Source of the DNA: Schmidtea polychroa
Lineage: Eukaryota
Reading direction: 5' to 3'
NCBI GenBank assembly: GCA_044892525.1
Contig: CM097886.1
Span: 81,654,001-81,718,000, forward strand
Length of the DNA stretch: 64,000 nucleotides
This document shows positions 18,373 through 30,931 of the stretch, one piece after another; within the stretch, counting starts at the first letter, position 1, and each line of letters begins with the position of its first letter. Under the pieces are notes generated by a model, which was not told where the DNA came from, did not search any database, and saw only the letters and a program-made list of their open reading frames with translations. The translations under genes were made by a program, and so were the position numbers.

Positions 18373-19343
18373 TGTTTCGACCAGTCAGAGTGGGATTGCC
18401 TCTGACTGGCATTTATTCGGTTTCTTTTTCTATCGCGTCTGTGTGCGCGGTCTGGTTAGACCGAATATTGTTGGTGTGCGCACACAGACGCGAGCAATGG
18501 ATTGTTATTTGGAAGTAGGTTTTGTTGTAATTTTTTATTTGAATTGATTTTTGATGTATTTTAATTAGAAATTCGAGAATTGGTTTTTGTTTTAAAAAAG
18601 GGAAATTCGAGAAGTTGGAGTTTAAGTTCCTTTGTAAAAATGGCTTCAGGTGTGAAATGTGATCCTTCAGTTGAAGAAGAAGAATTTGATTACAAATTTA
18701 TTAAAGCTTATGATGTTCCAAGCCAAGATCTTATTTCTTATTTCGATGAAACCAGTGAATTCATTGAAAATGGCAGAAAATTTGGTGGAATATCAAGAAG
18801 TGGAATTATTTTGACGGCTTATTTAATGAAACATTTTAAAGTTGGTCCAAACGAGGCGATTGAGACAATTAAGGAAAAGTCATTTATATGTCCAAATGAT
18901 GGATTCATGAAACAATTAAAGATATATTTCAACGTGAATTGTAGTGGTGATTACAAAAGTGATGAGTACAAACAATTTATCCGCTTATTTTCTCCAGATG
19001 AAATCAACAAATGCGCAAATACAGTTTCTCAAGCTCAATTTAATTTATCAGCATCTTCAAATCGAATTGTTGGCAACACGGAAATCAGGAATTATTCAAT
19101 TGAAGAATTATCCAACCAATTTTCTCAGTTGTCCGAATTATATGACTATCTGGGTACTTTGACGTTTATTTCTTGGATACCAGAAACAATGAAAGCTTCG
19201 AAAGCAATAAATGAAAGCACAATTTGCAATGAGGAAATACTTATCGAAGCTCTTCCTTGGATTGATAGCAGCAATGCAGACGGGGAAATGAAAATGACAG
19301 TGTTAAAGAATAAAATTTTAATGACTTATTTGGATCTTATTCA
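18373..19343 (+). repeat. 5' LTR of element 1 (971 bp, TG...CA) containing a DUSP-derived ORF
   Basis: Repeated at 22276-23252; ends TTCA immediately before the PBS. Confidence 0.9.
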
Positions 19344-22233
19344 TGGTAGCAGAGCGTGGTTCCGGCTAGCCAGCCGGAACAAGGTATTATTTATATTTTT
19401 TAAGAATGATATTTGTATTGTATTATATACATGTAATAGGTATCGTATGTTTATTATATTATATGTAGATTGGCTGTATTATATTTTTATTATATTTGTT
19501 ATTTTTGAAACATTTCCCCTAGGGCCTGCCCTCCCTAACCCCATTAGAGGTGGATTGGCGCGGGTATTTGTCAAAATAATAACAGGGAAGACAATTACTC
19601 TCGAAGTTGAATCTAGTGACACGATAGAAAATGTTAAAGCGAAAATACAAGATAAAGAAGGTAGTCCACCTGACCAGCAACGATTAATTTTCGCGGGGAA
19701 ACAATTTGAAGATGGGCGAACATTATCTGATTATAATATTCAAAAGGAGTCTACTTTGCATTTAGTTTTGCGATTGAGGGGTGGAATGCAAATATTCGTG
19801 AAGACATTGACTGGAAAAACAATAACTTTGGAAGTAGAATCAAGTGATACTATTGAGAATGTAAAGGCTAAAATTCAAGAAAAAGAAGGGATACCCCCAG
19901 GGCGAAAAAGACTTAATTTTGCCGGGAAAGTATTAAAAGATGGCCTAACGTTATTAGATTATAACGTTAGGAAAGAAGCCACGGTACATCTGGTTTTGGG
20001 GCTGGCAGGGGGAAGTCCAGTATCAGATGCGGAGTTCGAGCCAGGTTACAAGAGACGAACCGGGTGGAAGATTTCGTTAGGGCGTCTACGTAACCGGGCC
20101 TTAGGAGATGGATCGGACCCGGGGGAAGATCAAAGGAGAATGGAGGCATACGAAGATAAGTATGAGGAAGTGATCAACGAATTGGAGGAGCTGAGGAATA
20201 ATGCTCGGGAGTTAGGGCGGGAGAAAGAAGAAAAGGAAATTGAGGCAGATCTGAAACGGTTAGAAGCGGATTTCAGCAGAATCGGCGATCTGGTCCTCAC
20301 GCAGAAGGAAGAGAGTTTTAGAGTAGAGTCACGGAAGGGCACAGAAAAATCATTTAGGAGCGAAGAGCCCAATGAGAAACAGAAGTGCATAATGGGTTTG
20401 AAACCCTTGCAGCTGCCGATCTTTAATGGAAAGGTAATAGAATATCCTGGATGGAGGGCAATTGTGAGAGCCTGCATCGAGGACACGGATGAGCCGAGTG
20501 AAAGAAAGTACTTGTACCTGAGACAGTACATGGAAGGGAAGCCGCTGCAATTAATTGCCTATATTGGATATGGCTCGCAGGCTTTCGAGGCGGCGATAAA
20601 ATTACTCGATGAAAGGTATGGGGGACCAGAAAGATCCTATTCCATGATGCTGGATGTGGTGCAGAGGTTCTTTCCAGTGCGGCTGAAAGTACTGGAGGAC
20701 CTAGAGCGGTTTGAAGAGCTGCTAGGAAACCTCATCCTGAATTTCAAGGATCAGAAGAGGGAAGGCGAGCTGAACAACGGAATGTTGTATCACCAACTGC
20801 TGAAGAAGCTGCCAGAGACCATGCTAATTCAGTGGTTACGCCATTGTGATTCGGGGAGAGAGGGAAATGTACAAACGCTAGCCGAGTGGATCAAAACAGA
20901 AGCCGATAGGCATCGAAAAGCCTTGAATATATTATTTGGGGAGAGAACTCCAGGGAGTAGGAAGGATGTGGGGACATTGAAAAAGTTCACAAACTTCATG
21001 GAGAGAAAACCAATAGCAAGAAATCAAGCTTCAAGATGTTCGCATTTGGCTCAGAGTTATTTTGCAGTAACGGAAATGTTAAATGACGAGTTACATGCAG
21101 TTCGGGGAATTGAAGGCACAAAACTCGACAGGAGTAAGTCATCTAATGAAGAGCAAGGAGCTCAGAGTCATTTAGATGGGCAAATACCCAATTCTGGGGA
21201 TACTAACGAATTAGTTAACGGCATTGCAATCAGACAAAATTTCAGTGAGAATAACGAAATAGATTCCATAGATGTAATAAATCCTTCCGATTCAAAAAAT
21301 GATTCAGATATCGAAAGTAATGAAGATGAAAATGACGAAGAAGTGGATTATATTAAAGAATGTGATGAAAATGATGAAACACATGAAAACAAAAATGCTA
21401 GCGAAGATGGAGATAGTGAAAGCAATGAATGTGAGAATTTACAATCTAACGATATTATAAATCAAGATGGAATAGAGCAAAATCGAGTCAATGAGAACGA
21501 GAATAATTATTCTGAATTTGTAAAAAGTAATACTGAACTATTAGACAAAGCTTTTGATAAAGGAGACCAAGTTACAGCAGATGAGTTAGAAAATATTGTC
21601 AAAAGTCACAATCAAGAAGAAAATTTTGAAAGTAAATATGATGAAACTGAAGTAGATGTGTCAGACAAGAATGAAAATTATAATAGTCATGTAGGCACAG
21701 AGGTTGTCGACATTAATGTTATCGAAAGACCGAATTCTTTGGTAGAAGATAATTTTCAAAACATGGAAGACGTAGTTAATGTTCAAACGGATTCTGCTTC
21801 CTCAGAAAATCATTTAGAAACTGATCGAATTATGCCAGATTCTGAGAGTAATGACAGTGATCTTAGAGTCGATATTGGTAAAGATCATACATCCGACACA
21901 GCTAAAGATTCTGAACAAAATACATTCACTCAACCAACGTCTGCTTTAGATGATATCATTGAAGACTATTCACCTGGTTCCCTTTCATTAAATGAAATGC
22001 AACAGGGAAAAGTGGGGACTATTGAATTGGCGAAAAATGAAGGAAGAAGAATGGAGATATTGCACCTAAGCAGAATGAAAAGTGGCAGGGTCTTGGCCGA
22101 GTATGGCGATGGTGGGAGGAGAATCCATCATGATGTATCAAGAAAGGTGCGTGGTGCGGCGGCCTACACCATAGAAAGATGGGTGTGTGAGGGATATTGG
22201 AGAGATGCGAACAGAAAGTTTCCCCTGAAGTAA
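18640..22233 (+). CDS. Fusion ORF: DUSP12/YVH1-like fragment - PBS/linker - Ub - Ub - Bel Gag - acidic cargo - tail
   Basis: Single open frame (ORF track 18580..22233); ATG in AAAATGGC context at 18640. Confidence 0.8.
19344..19361 (+). promoter_or_regulatory. Primer-binding site (initiator tRNA-Met type), element 1
   Basis: TGGTAGCAGAGCGTGGTT directly after the LTR-terminal CA; TGGTAGCAGAG is complementary to the conserved tRNAi-Met 3' end. Confidence 0.88.
19558..20013 (+). other. Tandem ubiquitin domains (Ub1 19558-19785, Ub2 19786-20013)
   Basis: Two exact 76-codon units ending LRLRGG and LGLAGG. Confidence 0.97.
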
Positions 22234-30628: not shown

Positions 30629-30931
30629 TTTAACAAAGGAACTTGTTCCAGAACCGAAAGCCCTTTTTAAACTTCCACCAATAACAAACCAATTTAAAAC
30701 AAATCAATTCGAATTAAAAATCCAGAATTTCTGCCAAAAACCATTTATCATATAAAAATTAACAATTAATCAAAACCTACTTCTCGCGTCTGTGTGCGCA
30801 CACCAACAAGAATCGGTCTAACCAGACCGCGCACACAGACGCGATAGAAAAAAGCCAAACCACACCCACAACTATATGCGTCTGTGTGCGCCCACAGCCA
30901 ACAACACAAGGATAGTAAAAGGCGCACACAG
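30033..30931 (-). repeat. 5' LTR of element 2 (first ~21 nt hidden in gap)
   Basis: Matches 23250-24145. Confidence 0.9.

Follow-up and report, generated by a model that had tools for sequence, protein, structure and literature searches.

Coding sequence in the long terminal repeats (LTRs) of retroelements, and foreign or extended N-termini of Gag, are known from several systems. The sag gene of mouse mammary tumour virus (MMTV) lies in U3, and the nef and bel genes overlap the 3' LTR; these open reading frames (ORFs) end in the LTR, and their messengers are spliced RNAs of the 3' end. In the Gag-oncogene fusions of acutely transforming retroviruses, and in maize Bs1, a host mRNA was captured by template switching and fused to Gag, and the glyco-Gag of the murine leukaemia viruses is a Gag with an N-terminal extension, which results from initiation at a start codon further upstream. 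The Gag start codon of Ty1 from yeast is located in the 5' LTR. In this element of the Ty1/copia group, the primer-binding site (PBS) is found inside the GAG ORF (PMC4974528). LTR retrotransposons of bdelloid rotifers carry a variable extra ORF3 (PMC5408684), and in cytopathogenic pestiviruses as well as in cellular ubiquitin-fusion genes ubiquitin stands before another protein, the host cutting after its Gly-Gly (PMC13517609, PMC2850149). Here we describe a stretch of 64,000 nucleotides from Schmidtea polychroa (GCA_044892525.1, contig CM097886.1, positions 81,654,001 to 81,718,000 of the forward strand), referred to as the window, which contains two Bel/Pao LTR retrotransposons, called E1 (18373-23249, plus strand) and E2 (30931-23250, minus strand). 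In both of them, a reading frame that opens inside the 5' LTR stays open through the PBS and enters a ubiquitin-Gag fusion.

The LTR frame of E1 begins at ATG 18640 and that of E2 at ATG 30628 (minus strand), and they comprise 234 and 198 codons of LTR, respectively; in E1 the frame starting at this ATG has 1197 codons in all. Both run stop-free through the LTR end, the PBS with its hairpin and an AT-rich leader, into a ubiquitin recognised by Pfam and then a DUF1759 Gag, the PBS being inside the main ORF in each case. In E1, the 5' LTR (18373..19343, plus strand, 971 bp, TG..CA ends) is the repeat of 22276-23249 and is followed directly by the PBS, which starts with TGG and is accompanied by a 9-bp hairpin (19344..19385, plus strand) whose end resembles a 5' splice site, AAG/GT. 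The leader occupies 19386..19563, two ubiquitin units, both with the Gly-Gly retained, 19564..20013, and Gag with the acidic low-complexity tail behind it 20014..22233 (by Pfam and the ORF list, all on the plus strand). On the minus strand, E2 has its 5' LTR at 30033..30931, where the alignment of the LTRs places the first ca 22 nt inside the N gap 30932-31069, the PBS and hairpin at 29991..30032, the leader, with an internal duplication, at 29657..29990, a single ubiquitin-like unit with L73, G75 and G76 retained at 29432..29656 and gag-pol at 24160..29431.

The segment of PBS and hairpin, 42 nt long, is 100% identical in the two elements, occurs exactly twice in the window and encodes the same 15-residue peptide in both, and the Gag proteins of E1 and E2 share 32% identity. 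Using dinucleotide-preserving shuffles, the probability of finding no stop can be estimated to less than 2e-4 for each LTR ORF, and for the stretch from the PBS to the ubiquitin it is 0.006 in E1 and less than 2e-4 in E2. The remaining two frames over those stretches contain 3-25 stops. The leaders are AT-richer than the sequence on either side and have a poor codon score, unlike ordinary coding sequence, yet it is exactly the LTR frame, and this frame alone, that is free of stops; in E1 it is also the frame with the best score. These results bear out what a preliminary description had drawn from the sequence, that is, a layout shared by two Bel/Pao elements, with LTR pairs, PBS and polypurine tracts where it had placed them, an LTR-internal ORF that reads in frame through the PBS into ubiquitin-Gag, one and the same PBS peptide, and very divergent Gag proteins. 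The premise that Gag always begins after the PBS has a known exception in Ty1, where the PBS is inside the GAG ORF (PMC4974528). A conserved membrane-spanning leader peptide was considered and rejected, a strongly hydrophobic stretch being present in E1 only. The duplication in the E2 leader (29860-29990, minus strand) preserves the frame, and one short peptide motif is present there twice.

We now turn to the LTRs themselves. Alignment of the four LTR copies shows conserved modules that flank an unrelated body. Upstream there is a U3 palindrome block of ca 70 nt (18425..18494, plus strand), ca 97% identical to the E2 LTR and forming a long stem (z = -8.0). It is followed by a putative start of R (18591..18644, plus strand), assigned by its motifs, which consists of the TATA-like TTTAAAAA and a 21-nt start-codon block common to both families and identical in them save one variable position. 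The TATA-like TTTAAAAA stands 49 nt (E1) or 43 nt (E2) ahead of the LTR ATG, with no ATG between. Downstream, an AATAAA (19309..19314, plus strand, at the same offset in E2) would be the poly(A) signal and mark the end of R; in each family its distance from the 3' end of the LTR, counted from its start, is exactly 35 nt, and the AT-rich LTR of E2 has no other AATAAA or ATTAAA anywhere. Because the TATA-like box precedes the body and the AATAAA directly succeeds it, the variable body most likely corresponds to R, and U5 would be very short. The TATA-like box would then be the promoter, and transcription would start just before the LTR ATG, as far as motifs can tell. In retroviral replication, R need only match its own second copy, and both progeny LTRs receive a copy of what stands in the 5' R-U5 of the RNA.

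The conserved borders around a variable LTR body, suggested beforehand, are thus found in the start block, the TATA-like box and the AATAAA offset common to both families. The further suggestion that the ORF could be expressed from solo or 3' LTRs is not supported. The frame has no stop within the LTR, and in the 3' LTR copies it continues into flanking DNA; as the likely poly(A) signal, 35 nt ahead of the LTR end, is also reached earlier, solo and 3' LTRs should not be able to express the ORF properly.

The body of the E1 LTR, called cargo 1 (18640..19341, plus strand, 234 codons), turned out by Pfam and protein searches to be made of cofilin/ADF-like and DUSP12-like pieces together with two pieces of unknown origin. 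It matches the Pfam domain DSPc with 51.8 bits, over profile positions 36-131 of 133 only. Its best relative, P0121, is a DUSP12-like protein of 282 residues that is 67% identical over cargo residues 14-215 (86% of cargo 1); the match begins at residue 43 of P0121, the first 42 residues being unrepresented. At the phosphatase catalytic loop there is an in-frame gap of 8 residues, both relative to P0121 and relative to PDB 3s4e, and cargo 1 does not contain a complete DSPc with the catalytic cysteine loop. The second donor resembles P0122, a cofilin/ADF protein of 128 residues (PF00241, 58.8 bits), to which cargo residues 2-13 are identical at 12/12 positions and residues 167-185 at 17/19. A complete ADF-homology domain is likewise absent, ca 30 residues of the ADF fold being present, with no ADF Pfam match there. 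The order along cargo 1 is ADF, DUSP12, ca 26 residues of unknown origin, ADF, DUSP12 and ca 19 residues of unknown origin. In this mosaic the pieces of each donor are collinear with it, each recognisable piece keeps its native frame, and the junctions fall at residues common to the ADF and DUSP12 donors. With homologues existing outside the element, these pieces are evidently transduced host sequence, where the 'host' donors are the database proteins P0121 and P0122, given without species of origin. We have also considered that the non-DUSP12 stretch is a frameshifted copy of P0121, but it gives no sense-strand match in the other frames and is partly ADF-derived.

Cargo 2, the body of the E2 LTR (30035..30628, minus strand, 198 codons, from the ORF list and protein search), starts with an ADF-derived remnant, and its remainder is of unknown origin. 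The remnant is recognised by a 15/16-nt match between E2 30624-30609 and the ADF piece of E1 at 19163-19178. Beyond it, the protein search gave no credible homologue; the matches obtained (E 1e-7 to 5e-4), including a bacterial-type SpaA/thioester surface protein, are to short repeats in large repeat proteins, and were rejected as compositional. A single-sequence AlphaFold model of cargo 2 has a pLDDT of 34, too poor for a fold search. The codon scores of cargo 1 and cargo 2 are both highest in frame 0. Both LTR ORFs seem to descend from a captured cofilin/ADF-like mRNA that was later remodelled, and perhaps this mRNA brought its own start-codon context. An intact donor fold, ADF or DUSP12, is not possible in the cargo.

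It follows that the naming of the E1 ORF as DUSP-like can be kept in part, being supported by the DSPc score of 51.8 bits and the 67% identity to P0121, but the similarity is incomplete and belongs to a mosaic with cofilin/ADF-like pieces. In the same way, the view that the two LTR ORFs are unrelated is correct for most of the two bodies, which are different, but not for the start block and the short ADF-derived piece that they have in common. The idea of the LTR body as a working gene cassette is not supported by a cargo 1 that has no catalytic loop and only ca 30 ADF residues, nor by a cargo 2 that has neither a credible homologue nor a predicted fold.

Next, we consider the ubiquitin. The ubiquitin fold (PF00240) is above the Pfam threshold in E1, in E2 and in a third, degenerate copy described below, with scores of 181.5, 80.3 and 163.9 bits. 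The first unit of E1 is identical to host ubiquitin (first repeat of P0120) at 68/75 positions, and it has the full C-terminal tail and no Met of its own. The Gag-proximal units have diverged further, to 60/76 (E1) and 53/75 (E2), with I44 replaced by N, V or K and K63 also lost in E2. Directly before Gag, L73, G75 and G76 are present in all three copies. That the Gly-Gly is kept while the ubiquitin interaction surface drifts fits a predicted role as a cleavage module for host deubiquitinases. The Gag-proximal units of E1 and E2 align with each other, and because Gag itself is only 32% identical, the ubiquitin-Gag fusion evidently arose before the two families split. When E1 is compared with the third copy, ubiquitin-Gag differs by 32 synonymous and 23 non-synonymous changes, the random expectation being 22% synonymous, and it is thus under clear purifying selection. 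For the cargo, selection had been proposed as a check by the ratio of non-synonymous to synonymous change. Between E2 and the third copy, cargo 2 has 3-4 synonymous and 7-8 non-synonymous changes, an underpowered comparison of at most 11 changes; there is no excess of synonymous change, and on these tiny numbers the substitutions are indistinguishable from neutral.

The third copy begins with a 5'-truncated chimeric LTR (17549..18352, minus strand, by LTR comparison). In it, the promoter of the E1-type LTR, the ATG and 45 codons of cargo 1 are followed by the TATA-like box of the E2-type LTR and cargo 2, and the junction is a 9-nt microhomology. This chimera is direct evidence that the two LTR types recombine. 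Cargo 2 then runs straight into ubiquitin, without LTR end, PBS or leader, and the copy continues with a family 1 ubiquitin-ubiquitin-Gag, zinc knuckles and the start of a protease (15488..17548, minus strand, by Pfam and the ORF list).

Taken together, we favour the following explanation, to which we assign a probability of roughly 60%: the LTR-started frame is kept open, its body is a passenger patchwork of host mRNA pieces, and the ubiquitin lets Gag be freed. The main frame would start at the AUG that is conserved in the 5' LTR, a short way downstream of where transcription likely begins; as this AUG would be the first in the genomic RNA and is well placed, scanning ribosomes would initiate there. 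The frame would then cross the variable body (R), the very short U5, the PBS, the hairpin and the AT-rich leader before it reaches the ubiquitin and Gag. We infer that the body was assembled from pieces of host mRNA at microhomologies by template switching of the reverse transcriptase; the microhomology-joined chimeric LTR tells us that such recombination does occur. As the 5' R-U5 sequence would be copied into both progeny LTRs, the body could be inherited and swapped between families. Since only frames open into Gag can make Gag, variants that are closed before it would make none, and what is preserved would be the frame and not a protein fold. Host deubiquitinases would cut the arbitrary leader polypeptide after the Gly-Gly of ubiquitin and so give Gag a fixed N-terminus, rendering it indifferent to whatever is fused upstream. 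A start at the LTR AUG also agrees with the first ubiquitin of E1, which has no Met, and with the lone in-frame Met in the E1 leader.

It should be pointed out that a number of observations weigh against this explanation. The intact LTR-to-Gag junctions are two, the third copy being rearranged and out of frame, and relatives of the elements were not found outside the window in the collections scanned. An R of ca 650-700 nt far exceeds any known to us, and the poly(A) signal of the 5' LTR would need bypassing. The donor-like AAG/GT that closes the 42-mer could silence this adjacent signal, or else could mark the leader as an intron. In all Gag-proximal ubiquitin units R74 is C or A, and in family 1 R72 is G or W, changes that could weaken the cleavage. 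The gag-pol of E2 is itself interrupted, and at least the E2 copy is therefore not under current selection.

Among the other explanations, the first sees the LTR body as a slot in which functional proteins of host origin are interchanged and from which ubiquitin would release them, for example a pseudo-phosphatase or an actin-binding decoy. The conserved borders around different bodies, the host origin of the pieces with every junction in frame, the retained Gly-Gly and the codon scores, best in frame 0 for both bodies, would all be expected of such a slot. However, cargo 1 is without the first 42 residues of the phosphatase and its catalytic loop and holds ca 30 ADF residues, and cargo 2 is without a credible homologue, with a model at pLDDT 34, and shows no synonymous excess. 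Furthermore, there are two bodies only, and they share an ancestral piece. We judge this explanation to be unlikely. A bolder version of it, to which we give slightly less credence still, is that the R of this Bel/Pao lineage is a heritable cargo slot, through which host-derived polypeptides, for instance catalytically dead phosphatases or actin-binding decoys, would be sampled, made as the head of the polyprotein, released by deubiquitinases by way of the fixed ubiquitin-Gag module and set to act on the host cell. It has its basis in the fact that R only has to match itself, so that a captured piece of mRNA would reach both LTRs.

Another option is that the start of transcription is within the LTR body or downstream of it, and that translation begins beside the ubiquitin or at a Met of the leader; the LTR ORFs would be open only as coding sequence captured too recently to have decayed. 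The elements are indeed young, with LTR pairs more than 99% identical outside one patch, cargo 1 does derive from coding sequence, and suitable codons are at hand, since there are in-frame Mets in both leaders and E2 has a Met 10 codons before the ubiquitin. This would, however, leave unexplained why leaders that look non-coding are stop-free in the LTR frame (P = 0.006 and <2e-4) and why cargo 2 is open for 198 codons without a known parent. The mosaic junctions that hold the frame, the conserved start block, the AATAAA at the LTR end and the absence of a Met from the first ubiquitin of E1 also argue against it, and we hold this possibility to be improbable.

Less probable again is that the AT-rich leader is an intron with AAG/GT as its donor, where splicing would give an RNA for just the LTR polypeptide and a short tail, leaving the unspliced form as the genome and the messenger of Gag. 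In both elements the donor-like motif stands right after the hairpin and pyrimidine-rich AG sites precede the ubiquitin, the leaders are more AT-rich than their flanks, and the best-looking acceptors, chosen by eye, would shift the frame into an early stop. An intron, however, has no need of the open frame that the unspliced leader keeps, and the donor-like motif might just as well act to silence the 5' poly(A) signal close by. That the continuity between LTR ORF and Gag is a misassembly in a repeat-rich, gap-containing region, as the N gaps at 14674-14819 and 30932-31069, the odd head-to-head and tail-to-tail junctions and the chimeric third copy might suggest, is hardly credible, considering that the layout recurs twice with different bodies, leaders and Gag proteins and that each body is found in both LTRs of its own element.

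The state of the elements can be described as follows. The gag-pol domains of E2 according to Pfam are DUF1759, zinc knuckles, DUF1758, RVT_1, Peptidase_A17 and an integrase with DUF5641, and the Bel/Pao pol assignment is given by PF05380 (158.5 bits), PF00078 (40.6 bits) and PF18701 (83.5 bits). This gag-pol has two interruptions, a change of frame and an in-frame stop. The Bel/Pao-type Gag domain DUF1759 (PF03564) exceeds its cut-off in all three copies, and of the general hallmarks we find the TG..CA ends of the LTRs, the PBS after the 5' LTR and the polypurine tract before the 3' LTR. By sequence inspection, these tracts are at 22256..22275 in E1 (plus strand, directly before the 3' LTR) and at 24167..24187 in E2 (minus strand). 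The 3' LTRs, recognised as repeats of the 5' LTRs, are at 22276..23249 in E1 (plus strand) and 23250..24166 in E2 (minus strand, with the second copy of cargo 2), and both are without their last bases at the junction where they meet; a complete LTR of E2 would have ca 921 bp. E1 is non-autonomous, since it has no protease, reverse transcriptase or integrase domain in Pfam. In the place of pol it has ca 420 acidic low-complexity codons in the Gag frame (20962-22233, plus strand), which have no Pfam match, yet a coding-like codon score, and which may be another captured sequence.

The LTR pair of E2 has 889 matches and 6 mismatches in 895 nt, and that of E1 is ca 99.5% identical, with 4 mismatches and 1 gapped position, outside one U3 patch of ca 90 nt; by this identity, more than 99% in both pairs when the patch is set aside, the two elements are young insertions. 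The patch itself (18498-18587 compared to 22401-22498) has 26 mismatches and 9 gapped positions. A single replication cycle cannot yield such a divergence, and gene conversion or recombination between copies is therefore likely.

E1 and E2 meet tail to tail through their 3' LTRs (23240-23260); a few terminal bases are gone from each LTR, and the two are joined at a 3-nt microhomology. The third copy lies head to head with E1, ca 20 nt from its 5' end. In a check for target-site duplications, the 3' ends of E1 and E2 were found joined to each other and the 5' end of E2 in an N gap. Simple nested insertion does not explain this arrangement of three copies, and either rearrangement or misassembly is possible.

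A few other features of the window can be mentioned. A fragment of 833 bp at 62271-63103 belongs to a pol of the E2 type, with 97% identity to E2, and stands isolated, without an LTR in its vicinity. An intronless ORF of 293 codons at 38740-39618 (minus strand) resembles SF3A2 (Prp11) and has diverged partial copies in the window near 47545-48218 and 53502-54351; it was considered as a further LTR cargo and rejected, since it ends in a stop codon of its own and the LTR motifs are absent from it. Positions 1-4285 and 10036-14373 form long inverted repeats, 643-1278 (minus strand) encodes a Pox_A32-like packaging ATPase, and 14250-15014 (plus strand) contains an integrase-like ORF that an N run interrupts. 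These three look like pieces of a Maverick/Polinton-type element. The window has four N runs, at 11862-12024, 14674-14819, 30932-31069 and 51149-51308.

Searches for relatives of E1 and E2 were carried out in several ways. The region of the two elements contains no Rfam family and no tRNA gene. In collections of viral, metagenome and prokaryote genomes, the PBS-hairpin motif had zero matches and protein-guided scans with Gag and Pol were empty. A protein search with Gag only returned no matches, and with the 750-residue fusion as the query the results were swamped by polyubiquitins and thus uninformative. Exact-protein look-ups of six window proteins or matches led to no contig.

If the LTR-started frame is translated, hundreds of codons captured from the host can make up the R part of an LTR, and a ubiquitin placed in front of Gag can let a retroelement live with an arbitrary extension at the N-terminus of this protein; host-gene capture would then take place into the single segment of the LTR that is free to vary. 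A fixed ubiquitin-Gag fusion, of which a partial literature search found no report in Bel/Pao, would extend the known repertoire of this group, if true. For annotation, it should be noted that LTR ORFs of this kind can be mistaken for host genes or gene fragments.

How the two elements relate to the systems mentioned at the outset can now be stated. The same partial search of the literature did not find the combination seen here, in which the frame of a long and variable LTR body of host origin passes through the PBS and enters a fixed ubiquitin-Gag, and each known system covers a part of it. With MMTV sag, nef and bel, E1 and E2 have in common a protein-coding sequence within the LTR. However, an ORF of the sag type lies in U3 and ends inside the LTR, whereas theirs has no stop in the LTR and enters Gag from the 5' LTR. 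The Gag fusions of transducing retroelements contain captured fragments of host mRNA, as we propose for E1 and E2, but there the capture replaces internal genes, and here it is inside the LTR, upstream of the PBS, and hence duplicated at both ends. The rotifer ORF3 is an example of a modular exchange of coding sequence other than gag and pol among retroelement families (PMC5408684). It differs in being a separate unit downstream of pol with intact catalytic motifs, E1 and E2 having LTR fragments that are fused to Gag. Glyco-Gag is, as in E1 and E2, an N-terminal extension of Gag from an upstream start, but this start comes after the PBS, and the added part is of viral origin and has a function.

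The two closest parallels concern the two ends of the arrangement. In the pestiviruses, as in E1 and E2, a captured host ubiquitin is set directly before a viral protein. These are RNA viruses, however, and the insertions are sporadic variants, whereas the ubiquitin-Gag of E1 and E2 is old and fixed in two families whose Gag proteins are 32% identical; its cleavage is, for its part, predicted from the sequence only. The likeness to Ty1 is that the reading frame crosses the PBS, in that element (PMC4974528) as in E1 and E2. The difference is that in Ty1 the LTR contributes a few codons of Gag, while in E1 and E2 it contributes 200-230 foreign, variable codons, which are followed by a leader and ubiquitin.

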